63,807 nt of DNA, filler included, from Octopus bimaculoides (GCF_001194135.2; 6 parts of 6 records of this genome joined end to end with filler, not necessarily neighbours in it); one strand, 5' to 3'. Positions 49,226 to 58,689 are shown, counted from the first letter of the whole stretch. Notes: a model not told the origin generated them from the sequence alone. Made by a program: numbers and translations.

Positions 49226-50824
49226 AGAATATTTCATTTATCCTGTGAAGATCTGCAGTGAGTAAAATGTACTTCCTTAAATTAAGGGCTCCCTTTTTTA
49301 GGTGCACAGATGCTCTTTCCTTTCCAAAACTGTGTTAAAGTTTTGGGCCGGTTTTTATTTTTTGTTAGGGCTCAGATTTCTTTTATTGTTCTTTCAATTT
49401 CATGAAGGTACTTGTTACTCATAGATATATTTAATGTTGTTGTAATGATTAAAAAAAACGTCAGAGTTAGGTTTATTTTCTCTCATTTTCATGGGAATAC
49501 TTTTGCGATTACACGTTTTTAATGTATATTGGCATCATTTTTAACTGGTTCCTTTCCTTTCGTTTATTTGTCTATTTTAAAACATGTTCTTCTTACAAAA
49601 AAATCTGTTTCTCCAGATGAATGTCACTGACATTCCTCATTACGAAATTTTTAATGCATATAACTGGCATTATTGACGAATATTGTTTCTGTTTTACACC
49701 ATTGTCTTGCATGAAGCGTGTTCGATACTTCTTTCTCCTTTGGTTTTCATGACACCTTGAGAGAAATCAGGTTGGATTCTGTATCTTCTCTATGTGTTGT
49801 TGCTATAGTTTAACTGCAAGTCAGACATTCCTGCAAGGGCAGGGAATAGTTATAATCCTTTGGACGATAATCGATGAGGATTTAGTGACATTCTGTAAGT
49901 GTATTTTCCGTTTGTTTGTACTTCTATATAATTTTTTAACATACTATTTAATGTAACGACACGTACCTTATTTTGTAACTATTGTGTGTGTGTGTATTAA
50001 ATTTAAAAGGGAAAATGGCTTCTCCATCGTTCGAAAACGTACATAGCCAGACAGCTTGAACCACGCTCTAGCTAATTGTTTTAGGCACCTGTTTAGTCGC
50101 GAGCAGGTACAGACACCTGTTTTTTTTTTCAGTCCCACGCTTGATCCGGCGAAGCATCGAGAATATTACAGCAGGGAGGAAGCGCTGTGCTAGCAGTAGA
50201 CTAGCACTCATGGATCTTTTCTGTTTGGTTTTCATTTATCAATTCCTTTAATTTTGGATAAAAATAATCAAACTTTAAAACTCTGTAACATTTTTCTAAA
50301 ATTTTTGTGGAGCAAGTAAATAATAACATCAAATTCAGCGTGAAAAATTACATCAATATACCAAATTTTAAAATTTTCACTTAATTTAAAAATTTCTAAA
50401 TGTGAAAGCCAAACAAGAGATTCGCACTCATTTTTAGCAGATTAAACTAGAGCAACATGAAATGTGCCTTTCCCTAGAACACAACATGCGACCTAGTCTG
50501 GAAATCGAACTCATGATCCCAACAACCTAACCACGTTCTTCACATTAGTTTTTGATTTTGTTTTTACATCTCAAGAATTAGGTATTCGTTCATAATCCGA
50601 AAAATGACAATGTCAATCAATGCAACTCATCTCAGAACATTTGAGCAGGTTAGCTATATGTGATTATTGATGCGGTGCAAGAAACCTTAAAAATCAGTTT
50701 TGGTCTGGTCTATGTATTTGTTCATTTGTTCAGCTCCAACAACTGTATATTATTTCTTTGTAAACAAATATAAAGGGACATAACTCTCTCTGACTAGTGA
50801 TTTATATTGTCATCTTTATTGAAA

Positions 50825-50945
50825 ACTAGCTAAATAGCCCTTCGTTGCCAGGCAGCGAATGTTTTCTTCCCACGAGAGTTCCGGACCCCAGTAATGAACT
50901 CTTTTGTATAGAGCCAATCAGAGCAGAGCCACCTTCATCCTTTCT
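50825..50945 (-). mobile_element. Helitron-type 3' terminus of a short non-autonomous element
   Basis: Minus strand ends GCCtggcaacgaaGGGC-tatttag-CTAG|T; adjacent ~75 bp match 52465-52545 in inverted orientation. Confidence 0.55.
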
Positions 50946-51197
50946 TCCTTTCTAGTCAGCACCGTACCATCTTTACTCTTTCCCTGGCAGATAGTAACTT
51001 CGTCTAGGTTAATGTTTGTTTCTTTTTGCCATTGAGCATTGAGATGGCAGTGAGGTGTGCTAAAAATAACAGCTAAATAAGATATTTTAGATAAATCTTT
51101 TAAATTAAAGTTTATTTGCCAACATCTTGATCAGAGATTTAAAACTAACTGTTTTTCTCTTTTAAATTAACATAAACATTTATTTACAAGAAAGAAA

Positions 51198-52439: not shown

Positions 52440-54785
52440 GAATGCCAACATTTGTTAACTTGACAAGGTGAAGGTGAGCCCTGATTGGCTGCATACAAAT
52501 AACTACTTTACTGGGGTCCGGAACTCTCGTGGGAAAAAAATTTCGCCGTAGAGAAATTTTTACAATAAAATGTCTTGTATAGATTTTTGTTTATTCCATG
52601 TCAGACCATGACCGACAGATAGGCCTCTTGATCGGAACAAATTTGTGCAACTTTTCGCAAAAAAGCTTCGTTTAGAATTTTTTTTTCCTTTTTTAAATTA
52701 TTTACATAACTGTTCGACCGTTTCACACAAATTTATTCATTAAGACTTATTAAAACTTCAGAAGTTCTTTCACCTTTGGTCGTCGTAATGCTTTGCTTTC
52801 GTCTGTTTAATAAAAATTCCTCCTCGTAATAAATTTGCTTTCATTTTGTGATAGACAGCTATCATGAAGAAAATGCCAGCTTCCAAATCCTGTTTTCTGA
52901 TTAGGTAAAATTGATTTCTCACGCCCTCCTTGCACTTGGCGAAGGCAAAACTCCCTGCCACGAAAAGGGTAATGTTGCCATCGATTCACTTTGTACCATT
53001 GTTAATACGCCTTCTGATCTCATGGATGCAGTGTTCCCAGATCTCCAAGCAAATTATCAGAATATGGATTGGATTGGCCAAAGTGCTATTCAAGACCCCG
53101 AAGAATAAAACTGTTAACCATATTAATGATCAAATGCTAAAAATCATTCCTGGGGATTGCTATATATATAAATCTATCGATAGAACTCCTGACCCCTAGG
53201 ACATCATCAACTATCCAATGAAGGTACTAAATTCCTTTGAGCCCACTAAACTACCCCCACACATTCTGAAACTTAAACTCGATGCCCCTACAATGCTCAT
53301 TCGAAATTTGTTTCCACCGAAACAATGCAATAGGACACGTTTGATCGTTAAGTCCTTATCTCCCAATCTAATTGAAGCCACAATAACCACAGGGTGCGGT
53401 CGAGGCAACATTGTGCTCATACTGAGGATGCATCTTTTCCCATCAGGAGCAGACCTACCTTTTACATTTCGGACGTCCCAGTTTCCAGTCAGGCCATGCT
53501 TCGCAATGTCAATTAACAAATCACAGGAGCAAACGCTATCTGTCGCGGGAATACATTTCATGGAGTCGTGTTTCTCTCATGGTCAGCTTTACGTTGGCTG
53601 CTCGCGTGTGGGCAGCAAGAGTGATGCTTTCGCGTTCGTTCCACAAGGAAAAACAAAAAACATTGTGTACAAGGAGGTTTTATAGGATTACTTCGATTCC
53701 TAATTTTATAACTTTTTCTTTTTTTTTTTTTTTTTTTTTTTTTGCCTTTTTGTCAGTAATTTCTAACTAGGTGTAGATTAATATTCATTGCAGTGCACTT
53801 GACACTCCCAAACATCAGCTGTAAAATGGCTGATTCTCGCGGCGTTACAAAGCTTCATTACAAATCAGACCCTGCTAAAAAATCAGCTGTTCTTCCGCAC
53901 CATCAGAGGACCATGGACGCGTTACTATTTCACTTCCGTACGACTCTCAAAGGGTCAACAATGCTTTTATGAAAATATTTACATTTTTAGGCGGTTCCCT
54001 GCAATTACTTCATACTTCACCAACACCTGGCCTCCGCTCAGCTCTATTTCCCTCCCTTCATCAGCACAGCAGCCTCATCTTCTACATGAAAATAATTACA
54101 TGAAGTAATTATCTCTTACATGCCATTATGCCATTACAATTTAAATCAAATAACAAGACTTCAGAAGTCGATAAAACTAAATACATACATCCTCTCTCTC
54201 ACCATTATATTTTACACCATTACATTTTACATCAAATACAAAATATTCAAAAGTAACATGTCATTTTACACAACATCTCCATGACAGAGGTGTTGTGATT
54301 CATCTATTCAGCACCACTACACTCTTCCTGGTCTGACATATGGTGAGTAGATGCTATTGTTGTATATTTTCAAACTTACCCGTATTTACTTACCCATGAA
54401 TAATCCCCCTCTTTCCTCTATAGGGCATCTATTCTGTTTTCACAGAGCATGAAGTTTTGTAACAACACGTCAGCTGCCGTTGGTGGAAAAGGAACACGCC
54501 GTATTCACCTGCAAACGTTTTACACACCCTTCCAAGACTACCTATCAAATTGTTACAATTGTGAGAACGATAACACAGCCTTTTCAGGGCCACCTCACAT
54601 TCTATTGTTACCGCCTTCTTACAGTGTTGCAATGCTCTCTGCGGGGTTTTCTATCCATTTGCAAATCGATTGATTGGGCGTTAACTTATATCAATCTTTG
54701 CCTCAATAATCATAATTGGGTAGAATCATTAACAGTACTTTAAAACAATTCAGCCCTGAGCAACGCCGGACACTTCTGCCACTAG
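52440..54785 (+). mobile_element. 5'-truncated Helitron relic
   Basis: Helicase pseudogene inside; putative 3' end gccctgagcaacgccggac...ccaCTAG at 54753-54785 (following base is A, not the canonical T). Confidence 0.55.
52911..53685 (+). pseudogene. Helitron RepHel PIF1-like helicase C-terminal fragment
   Basis: LALGEG, VFPDL..NY, KNKTVNHIN, LPPHILKLK, CNRTRL, QFPVRPCFAMSINKSQ.QTL, FSHGQLYVGCSRV; frameshift ~53095 and stop ~53197. Confidence 0.92.
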
Positions 54786-54887: not shown

Positions 54888-56472
54888 TGCTACAGATCAA
54901 GATGAGAGGGATAACTTCCCTTGGCAAAACAAACAGGACACAGTAGTGTGTCGATAAGCCAGCTGGAGGAGATGTCCTCCTGGGGCTAAAAGCAACAGTA
55001 ACATCCACCCCTAGGGGTCAGCCACACTTAAGTGGCAATATACTTCACTTTATCGTGCAGTTACTGTTAATACTTCATTTAGAGAATTAACATTGCTTAT
55101 ATATATNNNNNNNNNNNNNNNNNNNNNNNNNNNNNNNNNNNNNNNNNNNNNNNNNNNNNNNNNNNNNNNNNNNNNNNNNNNNNNNNNNNNNNNNNNNNNN
55201 NNNNNNNNNNNNNNNNNNNNNNNNNNNNNNNNNNNNNNNNNNNNNNNNNNNNNNNNNNNNNNNNNNNNNNNNNNNNNNNNNNNNNNNNNNNNNNNNNNNN
55301 NNNNNNNNNNNNNNNNNNNNNNNNNNNNNNNNNNNNNNNNNNNNNNNNNNNNNNNNNNNNNNNNNNNNNNNNNNNNNNNNNNNNNNNNNNNNNNNNNNNN
55401 NNNNNNNNNNNNNNNNNNNNNNNNNNNNNNNNNNNNNNNNNNNNNNNNNNNNNNNNNNNNNNNNNNNNNNNNNNNNNNNNNNNNNNNNNNNNNNNNNNNN
55501 NNNNNNNNNNNNNNNNNNNNNNNNNNNNNNNNNNNNNNNNNNNNNNNNNNNNNNNNNNNNNNNNNNNNNNNNNNNNNNNNNNNNNNNNNNNNNNNNNNNN
55601 NNNNNNNNNNNNNNNNNNNNNNNNNNNNNNNNNNNNNNNNNNNNNNNNNNNNNNNNNNNNNNNNNNNNNNNNNNNNNNNNNNNNNNNNNNNNNNNNNNNN
55701 NNNNNNNNNNNNNNNNNNNNNNNNNNNNNNNNNNNNNNNNNNNNNNNNNNNNNNNNNNNNNNNNNNNNNNNNNNNNNNNNNNNNNNNNNNNNNNNNNNNN
55801 NNNNNNNNNNNNNNNNNNNNNNNNNNNNNNNNNNNNNNNNNNNNNNNNNNNNNNNNNNNNNNNNNNNNNNNNNNNNNNNNNNNNNNNNNNNNNNNNNNNN
55901 NNNNNNNNNNNNNNNNNNNNNNNNNNNNNNNNNNNNNNNNNNNNNNNNNNNNNNNNNNNNNNNNNNNNNNNNNNNNNNNNNNNNNNNNNNNNNNNNNNCT
56001 GCAGGTTATTTTTGAGAAGTGTTCCCCACTCGGTGGTGTTTCGGAGCAAGTCGTCCATAATTGTTTCATTTTTCTCTATTATGTGCGTATGTGCATCCGT
56101 AGATTTCTAATGAAGTAATACGCTGCTTCTGTTCTCTTCTACTTCTCTACTAGAAACGTTTACTTTGGAATCGGGGAAGGGGTACAACTCTGTAGTTATG
56201 CCGTTTTAGGGAAAAGAACCATATGTGACAGTGGATTTTCATCGATGAGTTCATGAACCTTGGTTCTTTTCCCTAAAACTATATATTTATATATTTATAT
56301 ATATATATGTGTGTGTGTGTGTGTATAAACATATATATAAATAAACACACACACACACTAATTAGTGAATTAACATTAAAGAGGTTTTCCAGCGCGGCCA
56401 ACTTTTCATCTAAAAGTGGTGAATTGTTTTTGTATTTTTTTCTTTCTCTCTTTTTTTCTTTTTAATTTTTTT

Positions 56473-57222
56473 GGCACTGTCATGGTATTAGCTGTCAGAA
56501 ACAAGGAATGTTACTGCTGGTTTGAGTTGAAATCTGTTTCTTTAGCTACTGACTGGCCGGAGCTATCTATCTATCTATCTGTCTGTCTGTCTGTCTATCT
56601 CTCTATCACTCGTCCACCTTCGTTTGTTTCCGTAGAATTTATCAAATTAGAAAAAAAAACTTTTTGGTTACTTCCATCATGCTAGCTCCACACGAGGGGC
56701 ATATTTTTGGGGTATTTAAAAGTCCATGTCTCTTAAGCCAATTAATACTATTTTCTGTTGTAGCGGTGGCGATGGCAATATCGCGGTGATTAATTCCAAC
56801 TTTGGATTACGCGTGGTGGTGGTCATTGGTGGTGCTGATTGGTGTATGTGATTTGTTTTTAAAAACAATAATGAATAATGCAAAAGTATATTTATTTATA
56901 AAGTTTAAACTGAACATGATATGAAATATATTTATTTATAAAGTTTAAACTGAATTTCATTTGTTTAAATTCTACGGAAACGCATTTTCTAATTTGATAA
57001 ATTCTACGGAAATGCATTTTCTAATTTGATAAATTCTACGGAAACAAACGAAGGTGGACGAGTGATAGATAGATAGAGAGAGAGAGGGAGAGGGAGAGAA
57101 AGAGACAGATAGCTCCAGCCAGTCAGTAGCCAAAGAAACAGATTTCGACTCAAACTAGCAGTAATATTCCTTGTTTGGATTTTTCTACTTTCATTTCTGA
57201 CAGCTAATACCATGACAGTGCC
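56473..57222. mobile_element. Long-TIR non-autonomous DNA transposon (Merlin/MULE-like foldback)
   Basis: Arms ~56473-56655 and ~57019-57222 starting GGCACTGTCATGGTATTAGCTGTCAGAAA; flanks attttttt / attttttc (7/8 putative TSD); internal short tandem duplications. Confidence 0.75.
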
Positions 57223-57301
57223 ATTTTTTCAGTTGTGTTCTCTAATTTAATTTCGTAAAGCGGTAAACACTGTGAAAGTTAAAACTTCACTCCTAAGCGA
57301 A

Positions 57302-58189
57302 ATGACAAACCCGGAAGTCGAATCAGAACACCTAACTGCTATAAAGCACAAGGACGCTCTATTTAAAAGTAAATCTACAACAGGTGCTTGTTTTCCTCCT
57401 TCAGGGGAAGAAGATTTGGGGAAATATTTTGCTAAATATGATATGACACATAAAAAGCCAGGTGTCGCCTACATCTTCAACAATGAAAACTTCCAAGACC
57501 CGTTACTAAACACTCGTTATGGCTCATCAAAAGACGTACACGATTTTGAAAGAGCATTAATAAAACTTGGATTCCATGAAGATGATATCAATGTTTATAC
57601 AGATTCAACAGCCGAAGAAATGTTCGACGTTTTCCAGATGTTTAACGAAGAAAATCTTGATATTGATTGCTTTATTTGTGTGATTCTGAGTCATGGTAGT
57701 TCAGACGATATTATCTATGGATACGACGGTGTTATTGAACTAGACAGATTACTTTCTTGCCTGAGACCCGACCGTTGTCCATCTTTAACCGGAATACCTA
57801 AATTAATCTTTATTGAAGCCAGTAGAGGAAATAAGCTTGATTATGGAGTTCTAAAATCGGATGCTGCTGTCATAGAACCTGATAAAAATTCATCCCGAAT
57901 TCCAATCATGGCTGATATGTTGATTGTTTATTCGTCGTTTGCTGGATATCAGTCTTTCAGGGATAGACAGAATGGTTCGTGGTTTATGCGAGGTCTAAGT
58001 AAAATTTTGATAGAATTTGGCACCAAATACGAAATCATGAAACTTTTAACTGCTGTGTCTAATTACGTTGCCTCTTTAGAAGCCCCAAGTTGGTATAATT
58101 CGGAATTCATTGGCTGTAAGCAAATGCCTTGCATTGGATCATCGTTGACTAAACAACTAAAGTTTGTACGAAAGAACAAATCAGATTGA
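57302..58189 (+). CDS. Caspase-3/7-like protein (peptidase C14A fold, 295 aa), predicted catalytically inactive (QACRG to EASRG)
   Basis: Stop-free ORF with PGVAYIFNNENF, TRYGS, CFICVILSHG, CPSLTGIPKLIFIEASRG, ADMLIVYS, FRDRQNGSWF and KQMPC..SSLTKQLKF; first true ATG at 57302 (the track starts at a GTG). Confidence 0.9.
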   Translation: MTNPEVESEHLTAIKHKDALFKSKSTTGACFPPSGEEDLGKYFAKYDMTHKKPGVAYIFNNENFQDPLLNTRYGSSKDVHDFERALIKLGFHEDDINVYTDSTAEEMFDVFQMFNEENLDIDCFICVILSHGSSDDIIYGYDGVIELDRLLSCLRPDRCPSLTGIPKLIFIEASRGNKLDYGVLKSDAAVIEPDKNSSRIPIMADMLIVYSSFAGYQSFRDRQNGSWFMRGLSKILIEFGTKYEIMKLLTAVSNYVASLEAPSWYNSEFIGCKQMPCIGSSLTKQLKFVRKNKSD

Positions 58190-58689
58190 ATGTACATTTT
58201 TACTCTTTTATGTATATACGTTGCTCATTTAGTATTTACGGTGTCATTTCTCGGCATAATTACAGATTTCTGGATGGAGCTGGACAACAGTCAGCTTCCC
58301 CCCCCCCCCNNNNNNNNNNNNNNNNNNNNNNNNNNNNNNNNNNNNNNNNNNNNTTAATTAATTAANNNNNNNNNNNNNNNNNNNNNNNNNNNNNNNNNNN
58401 NNNNNNNNNTCCACCAGTGCATGTCTCCAAATATTCGGTTAATGGAATCTTTCTGCATCGTAGCCGTCTTATGTGGAGACTGTGTTTGCATCTTCTGAAA
58501 CAATGTGTTTTTGAGTTGTCCAACAGCAATATTTTTGGAGCTGCAACATTTGAAAATACGCATGCACGCACGCACGCACGCACACACATACACACACACA
58601 CACACACACACCCTCTGTCTTTCCCTCTCCCCTCTCTCTCCATCTCTCTCCCTCCCCCTCTCTCTCTCTCTCTTCACGCAGACACGCAC

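Follow-up and report, generated by a model that had tools for sequence, protein, structure and literature searches.

Can a caspase that has exchanged its catalytic cysteine for a serine still be of use to the animal that carries it, and in what way? The question is raised by a caspase homologue of Octopus bimaculoides, P0001, whose active-site pentapeptide reads EASRG in place of QACRG. The gene lies in a window of 63,807 nucleotides, the whole stretch of DNA that was analysed, in which parts of six records of the genome are joined end to end with filler. Positions are counted from the first letter of the window unless another locus is named. We consider that P0001 is a selectively maintained, fast-evolving and non-catalytic caspase paralogue, a reading to which we give a probability of roughly 0.6; its mechanism would be the modulation of its active neighbours or competition with them, as we infer.

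Domain Architecture and Active-Site Residues

P0001 is encoded on the + strand by a single uninterrupted exon, along which the residues of the caspase active site and the subunit regions are placed as follows.

57302-58189, + strand: complete single-exon coding sequence of the EASRG caspase homologue P0001, 295 codons plus TGA (ATG at 57302, TGA at 58187-58189)
57302-57436, + strand: poorly conserved short prodomain, residues 1-45 (Pfam reports the C14 domain only; pLDDT about 57-77)
57515-57517, + strand: codon CGT of Arg72, the first S1-pocket arginine by alignment, equivalent to caspase-7 Arg87
57692-57694, + strand: codon CAT of His131 in LSHG, the catalytic histidine position by alignment
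57815-57829, + strand: EASRG replacing QACRG, GAA GCC AGT AGA GGA (E172 A173 S174 R175 G176)
57815-57817 and 57821-57823, + strand: codons GAA of Glu172 and AGT of Ser174, within the pentapeptide
57860-57862, + strand: codon GAT of Asp187, putative cleavage site of the intersubunit linker, VLKSD/AA, aligned to caspase-7 IQAD/S
57863-58186, + strand: p10-like small-subunit region by alignment and model, with the GSWF motif and the dimer-interface strand KQMPCIGSSLTKQL
57959-57961, + strand: codon AGG of Arg220, the second S1-pocket arginine by alignment, equivalent to caspase-7 Arg233

By profile and sequence comparison, the homology of P0001 to caspases is far beyond chance. The Pfam family Peptidase_C14 (PF00656) matches residues 54-286 with E=3.9e-49 and is covered from profile position 2 to 232 of 233. 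In a phmmer search of the PDB, human caspase-7 is the best match (1e-45), and caspase-6 and caspase-3 are found at about 1e-45. This full-length profile match and a fold with both p20 and p10 parts make the protein a Peptidase C14 homologue. It belongs to the effector subgroup, since it has no CARD or DED, a prodomain of about 45 residues, and caspase-7, -6 and -3 as its best matches. A reading of the DNA made from the sequence alone had already proposed an intact short-prodomain effector caspase homologue, and this holds, as do its coordinates for the open reading frame, the histidine and the pentapeptide. The coding sequence is identical to L001 10001-10888 on O. bimaculoides chromosome CM046619.1 (21.8366 Mb, GCA_001194135.2), and the protein was already present in earlier public protein sets.

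The alignment with caspase-7 pairs IEASRG with IQACRG, LSHG with LSHG, TRYGS with VRNGT, SFRD with SWRS, and VLKSD/AA with IQAD/SG. Ser174 (AGT) aligns with the catalytic cysteine of QACXG, and His131 occupies the place of the catalytic histidine in SHG. The S1 Arg-Gln-Arg triad is incomplete: Arg72 and Arg220 are present, and the glutamine is Glu172. A replaced nucleophile next to a retained catalytic histidine, both S1 arginines and the linker aspartate is what the sequence-only reading had described. Arg72 is kept in all three P0001 orthologues, and the codon of His131 is CAT in O. bimaculoides, O. sinensis and O. vulgaris. Arg220 is kept in the P0001 lineage, whereas Gly or Ile has taken its place in the family's second lineage with Ser. 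Asp187 is invariant across 23 family members.

An AF2 model of P0001 from a 107-sequence alignment has a mean pLDDT of 86.4 and a pTM of 0.81. It falls below high confidence only in the first ~40 residues, the disordered linker 187-200, the L4 loop and the last residues. This run superseded an earlier one with a 23-sequence octopus alignment, which reached a pLDDT of 58.7 and left the p10 part unresolved. In Foldseek, the best matches of the model are caspase-7, -3 and -6 (E about 1e-29, target-normalised TM 0.93-0.94).

Origin and Age of the Substitutions

The 15 nucleotides of the pentapeptide are identical in the assemblies GCA_001194135.2, GCA_006345805.1 and GCA_951406725.2 of O. bimaculoides, O. 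sinensis and O. vulgaris, respectively. In the syntenic orthologues, XP_029648408.1 of O. sinensis (77% identity) and CAI9736553.1 of O. vulgaris, the motif is V-E-A-S-R-G. The O. bimaculoides scaffold has N-run gaps nearby, but the idea that the two codons were misassembled or misread found no support and is ruled out, because three independent assemblies agree on the pentapeptide; the presence of the protein in the earlier protein sets also speaks against it. The assembly error on which the sequence-only reading would have foundered is thus contradicted by the codons of three species. On the strength of these shared codons, both Cys-to-Ser and Gln-to-Glu predate the split of O. bimaculoides from O. 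sinensis and O. vulgaris. At the same two codons, the paralogues next to P0001 read CAA and TGT, and each substitution is therefore a single-base change, as had been supposed. It had also been stated that A-to-I editing cannot restore the cysteine; by the genetic code, an edited AGT becomes GGT (Gly).

A Tandem Array of Octopus Caspases

Chromosome CM046619.1 of O. bimaculoides carries P0003 (21.784 Mb, VQASRG) and P0004 (21.822 Mb, IQACRG) in addition to P0001. The array of O. sinensis has the same order and spacing, and the four gene models CAI9736553-56 of O. vulgaris are consecutive. This conserved gene order places the P0001 gene at one end of a tandem array of four genes, the outer two of which lack the cysteine. 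A gene of the P0004/P0012 type lies 11-13 kb from the P0001 gene in both O. bimaculoides and O. sinensis. In each of the three species, QACRG genes are neighbours of the P0001 gene on its chromosome, which makes P0001 a paralogue of active caspases that arose by duplication; residues essential for catalysis are substituted in it (Cys to Ser, Gln to Glu). The sequence-only reading had the kind of gene right; the array, with its second and independent Cys-to-Ser paralogue, was absent from it.

All relatives of P0001 with more than 45% identity come from Octopus or from sequencing runs. In the tree, the octopus expansion forms a clade apart from the canonical cephalopod caspase-3-like genes, which are located on other chromosomes and show about 38-41% identity. 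The coding sequences of all examined members of the expansion are uninterrupted. As judged from its sequences, catalytic degeneration is common in the expansion. P0017 (O. bimaculoides) and P0018 (O. vulgaris) have the histidine replaced by cysteine (LSCG/LSCS) and keep QACRG, and P0024 and P0025 of O. bimaculoides have lost both His and Cys (INYD/IEPSR and TNHN/IGPSR). The QACRG neighbour is full length in O. bimaculoides (279 aa) and O. vulgaris (279 aa). Its O. sinensis counterpart P0012 (L005 3001-3777) is annotated with 258 aa and an unrelated C-terminal tail, which appears to be either a frameshift or an assembly or annotation problem.

Recurrence of the Serine and of the Glutamate

The second Ser-bearing paralogue is represented by P0003 in O. 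bimaculoides (XP_014775611.1, L003 3001-3846) and P0028 in O. sinensis (XP_036367181.1, L007 3001-3840). Like P0001, it belongs to the same family and array, has Ser for Cys, and has an open reading frame conserved across species. Unlike P0001, it has lost the second S1 arginine (Gly/Ile), has a lower omega (0.58) and is listed in a proteome. The serine codon is TCT in P0003 and P0028 and AGT in P0001, and the Ala and Arg codons differ as well, which indicates that the cysteine was lost twice independently in the array. On the same codons (GCC AGT AGA against GCA TCT CGT), a gene conversion between these two lineages was dismissed. Serine makes up two of the seven non-synonymous, non-stop one-step neighbours of TGT; two Cys-to-Ser events by themselves are therefore only mildly improbable. 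P0001 and its twin can be regarded as a natural replicate experiment, in which the thiol was lost by different mutations and both genes were kept.

Both Ser lineages later tended towards a glutamate in the S1 pocket. In the second lineage, the change is found in O. sinensis and O. vulgaris and is confined to their branch, whereas O. bimaculoides still has Gln. Gln-to-Glu is present in all three Cys-loss lineages, namely P0001, the second Ser lineage and the third, more degenerate P0024, versus one of ten Cys-retaining groups (p=0.014). Outside molluscs, E-A-S-R-G together with the histidine occurs in two hemichordates, Glandiceps talaboti (P0052/P0178) and Ptychodera flava (P0202), and in a midge, Diamesa hyperborea (P0047). 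Both S1 arginines are kept in Glandiceps and Diamesa, and the second is lost (Leu) in Ptychodera. The cricket Anabrus simplex has E-A-S-K-G (P0030). In the unindexed search set, retrieval from which is biased to the query motif, the states of positions 172/174 are Q/C in 170 sequences, E/S in 12, Q/S in 4 and E/C in 2. Given this bias, the coupling of Gln-to-Glu with Cys loss across phyla is a lead from sequence comparison, not a result. If real, it would inform how a caspase active site freed from substrate binding is stabilised, and it would offer an easy marker at the sequence level by which decoy caspases could be recognised in further genomes.

A further VEASRG relative, P0041 (SRR11869385, L008 148-903), was recovered from the Logan runs SRR11869385/6; its contig has no poly(A) and therefore gives no evidence of transcription. 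The literature search returned no paper that has QACRG together with QASRG, EASRG or QSSRG, and the papers with EASRG or QASRG alone were unrelated to caspases. A survey of squid caspases contains no Ser variant among its caspases (PMC9389742).

Selection on P0001

Between O. bimaculoides and O. sinensis, the Nei-Gojobori dN/dS of P0001 is 1.13 (dN 0.130, dS 0.115; bootstrap CI 0.71-2.10), and it is 0.90 in the caspase domain alone. The corresponding omega is 0.58 in the other Ser lineage (lineage B, represented by P0028) and 0.45 in an intact neighbour. For P0001 as a whole, the value does not differ significantly from 1, and some of the sequence may therefore be free of constraint. The reading frame gives a different picture. 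The neutral yardstick consists of the alignable orthologous non-coding flanks, which are biased towards conserved DNA; their mismatches amount to 9.0%, and gaps occur at 1.04 events per 100 nt, 30% of them multiples of three. The coding sequence has 11.8% mismatches and three gaps, all in frame (9, 6 and 6 nt). No frameshift is seen where the flanks predict about 6.4 (P=0.0016). In simulations of neutral mutation with 104 substitutions, the open reading frame stays free of stops with P 0.006-0.04. The joint probability of no stop and no frameshift is about 1e-5 to 6e-5.

The distribution of the amino-acid changes is strongly non-uniform. Differences between the O. bimaculoides and O. sinensis proteins fall on 8 of the 115 family-conserved columns versus 53 of the 157 variable ones (p=6e-8). 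In the same test, a catalytically intact paralogue pair shows the same pattern (10 of 111 versus 58 of 164); the pair P0009/P0005 was compared at the protein level only. Only seven departures at family-conserved columns (at least 80%) are common to the lineage, and Q172E and C174S are among them. Because changes avoid the conserved columns and few departures are fixed there, the scaffold of P0001 is, on this comparison, under purifying selection. In the variable half, the rate of change equals or exceeds the neutral one: dN is 0.20 versus a dS of 0.11 (p=0.04), and the excess over the flank rate has p=1e-6, a comparison in which the alignable flanks are biased towards conserved DNA. The ORF-survival, frameshift and conserved-column tests agree that the gene has been retained by selection; with omega near 1, the constraint is partial.

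A young unitary pseudogene, drifting neutrally after the loss of the cysteine with its reading frame open by luck, would explain why dN/dS does not differ from 1 and why the coding sequence is no less diverged than the flanks. The ancestral ATG is also gone in O. bimaculoides, and expression of the gene was not found directly in the collections searched. Nevertheless, we hold this explanation to be very unlikely. It would have to accommodate the joint chance given above, gaps that are in frame without exception when only 30% of those in the flanks are, an avoidance of conserved columns like that of the intact pair, and active-site codons that are identical in three species, in none of which a stop or a frameshift occurs. 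The sequence-only reading had taken a dN/dS near 1 as the sign of a young pseudogene; the observed value fits the number, but the intact frame and the spared scaffold do not fit the conclusion.

Proposed Mechanism and Comparison with Known Decoy Caspases

The history of P0001 and its proposed mode of action are as follows. P0001 arose by tandem duplication in an octopus-specific family of intronless short-prodomain caspases. The thiol nucleophile and the S1 glutamine were lost, to Ser and Glu respectively, before O. bimaculoides parted from O. sinensis and O. vulgaris, and the gene has been kept ever since. Selection preserves its frame and structural core; the fast changes are those at surface and loop positions. 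Most probably, P0001 modulates its active neighbours without catalysis. It may pair with them through the conserved caspase dimer interface, and/or it may compete with them for upstream activators or inhibitors. As Asp187 is retained, P0001 would be open to processing like a true effector caspase. Glu172 probably pairs with Arg72 and Arg220, neutralising these two arginines, and takes the place of the P1 aspartate of a substrate; retention of Asp substrates by P0001 is therefore not expected.

In the laboratory, Cys-to-Ser caspases serve as standard dead mutants, and P0001 is likewise predicted to be without protease activity. We group it with the natural pseudo-caspases or decoy caspases because it is intact, its nucleophile is truly replaced and it is kept by selection. 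The pseudo-caspase proposal of the sequence-only reading thus stands as far as the kind of gene is concerned, with a real Cys-to-Ser change in three assemblies. Its suggestion of a substrate trap is weakened: the Gln172-to-Glu change puts a carboxylate into the very S1 pocket that binds the carboxylate of the P1 aspartate, which disfavours a trap for Asp substrates.

Pseudo-enzymes that regulate active paralogues are a recurring theme in the control of cell death; mammalian FLIP is one example, and the decoy caspases of insects are another. Human caspase-7, -3 and -6 (MEROPS C14A) have 34-38% identity to P0001 over the catalytic domain and the same p20-linker-p10 layout. The short prodomain, the catalytic histidine, both S1 arginines, GSWF and the linker aspartate are common to them and P0001. 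P0001 differs from these enzymes in its serine for cysteine, its glutamate for the S1 glutamine, its intronless coding sequence and its octopus-only expansion. Compared with c-FLIP(L), P0001 is likewise a caspase-fold paralogue without the catalytic cysteine. However, c-FLIP(L) is of the initiator type, with tandem DEDs, and is recruited to the DISC, whereas P0001 has no recruitment domain and keeps the histidine and the S1 arginines. FLIP has also lost the catalytic histidine. FLIP(L) acts as a human pseudo-caspase by heterodimerisation with an active caspase (PMC7586951).

Decoy caspases that arose by duplication are described in insects (PMC7768685, PMC3141678, PMC4840389). According to these papers, which cite Bryant et al. 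2010, CASPS18 of Aedes aegypti regulates its active paralogue CASPS19. CASPS18 resembles P0001 as a short-prodomain, effector-type local duplicate with substituted catalytic residues that is still retained. P0001 differs in its independent origin in a mollusc and in that regulation of a paralogue is a conjecture in its case. CASPS18 is reported to enhance its partner, while for P0001 an effect in either direction is possible. No description of a pseudo-caspase regulator in cephalopods was found in the literature searched.

Skin Mucus and Alternative Roles

No transcript contig encoding P0001 was found in the sequence collections searched. Evidence on its relatives comes from the skin-mucus proteome of O. 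vulgaris (PMC11431876). At least five caspase-family proteins are present there, and caspase InterPro terms are about five-fold enriched. Supplement 7 lists A0A7E6FHF5, which is the second Ser lineage under an O. sinensis identifier, and A0A6P7TCU4, of the QACRG neighbour type (PMC11431876). Three more caspase-family proteins, two from the expanded family and one canonical caspase-3-like protein, are listed in the same proteome (PMC11431876). The identifiers of the P0001 orthologues do not appear in the examined part of the supplements (PMC11431876). There are hints here that the octopus caspase expansion is tied to skin or mucosal biology. The occurrence of the family in mucus and the rapid evolution of its surface suggest a possible link to barrier immunity and not so much to housekeeping apoptosis.

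The same proteome lends some weight to the possibility that P0001 is kept for a role unrelated to caspase regulation, for example as a structural or defensive component of skin mucus that reuses the fold. Both the other Ser variant and the immediate neighbour type are among the mucus proteins, and fast surface evolution is typical of host-pathogen interfaces. This remains unlikely in our estimate, as the N-terminus of P0001, judged by eye, does not resemble a signal peptide, its own orthologue is absent from the lists examined, and peptides common to paralogues can inflate shotgun identifications. The chance is slimmer that P0001 is a working hydrolase with a serine-type Ser174-His131 centre, maybe aided by Glu172 and perhaps with an altered P1 preference. 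His131, Gly132, Arg72 and Arg220 are all kept and conserved in the P0001 lineage, serine specifically was reached twice through different codons, and the same E-A-S-R-G with the histidine and both arginines occurs in a hemichordate and a midge. Yet laboratory Cys-to-Ser caspases are in general use as dead mutants, and caspases are without an acid partner that activates the hydroxyl of a serine. The two serine events are, as noted, no great coincidence. Moreover, relatives with the same motif later lose the histidine (P0041, P0030, P0024) or an S1 arginine (P0003, P0028, P0202), which is expected if catalysis is no longer selected and weighs against a serine protease. We have similarly little confidence in the wider proposal that EASRG is more than a dead QACRG, namely a convergently selected active-site state to which the octopus array came no fewer than two times, and to which hemichordates and insects came as well. 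In this proposal, Ser174-His131, with Glu172 in the S1 pocket, would give the caspase fold a new activity, either serine-type hydrolysis or the recognition of a P1 residue other than Asp.

Start Codon, Upstream Region and Surrounding Window

The start codon at 57302 occurs in O. bimaculoides alone: when 57302-57349 of the window is compared with L002 9953-10003 and L006 2953-3003, ATT stands in place of this ATG in O. sinensis and O. vulgaris. In the latter two species, the gene starts at an ATG about 16 codons downstream, in register with the start of the paralogues. This ancestral ATG was lost in O. bimaculoides within a 9-nt gap. By this alignment, the first 16 residues of P0001 derive from a former leader sequence, and the O. 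bimaculoides protein relies on the new upstream ATG or on Met48. The loss could be an early step of decay in this species. Just upstream of the coding sequence is a conserved block:

57238-57282, + strand: 45-nt block just 5' of the coding sequence, with about 95% identity to the orthologous loci of O. sinensis and O. vulgaris

The orthologous alignment of the upstream region begins at this block, which is probably a 5' UTR or core promoter in view of its conservation and position.

An inverted repeat (56472-56654 and 57017-57223) has arms of about 180-200 nt that are 83-100% complementary. It ends 79 nt upstream of the ATG and contains tandem duplications of 40 nt and 32 nt (56884-57029). The repeat is absent at the orthologous loci of O. 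sinensis and O. vulgaris and looks like a lineage-specific insertion of the transposon type that replaced the upstream region. A 5' UTR intron that would use the putative splice acceptor TTTTTTCAG (57224-57232) was rejected, since the site is not conserved in the orthologues and lies within an O. bimaculoides-specific repeat. The poly-C tract 58298-58309 marks the end of the piece, and because of the gap that follows, the 3' UTR and polyadenylation signal of P0001 are missing from the O. bimaculoides assembly. Runs of N with flanking microsatellites are present at 47.8-48.4 kb, 51.4-51.6 kb, 55.1-56.0 kb and after 58309.

An Rfam search of the piece that carries P0001 gave no match. The block 50386-51193, 808 nt of non-coding DNA between caspase genes, is 95.5% identical to O. 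sinensis with mismatches only, compared with about 91% identity in the neighbouring non-coding DNA. It has no open reading frame of 60 aa or more and no Rfam match, is single-copy among the fetched loci, and could be either a regulatory element or an untranslated exon. An open reading frame of 155 aa at 53218-53685 (+ strand) matches the Pif1 helicase 2B domain (PF21530, 1.2e-07) and probably represents part of a broken Helitron-type or Pif1-like element.
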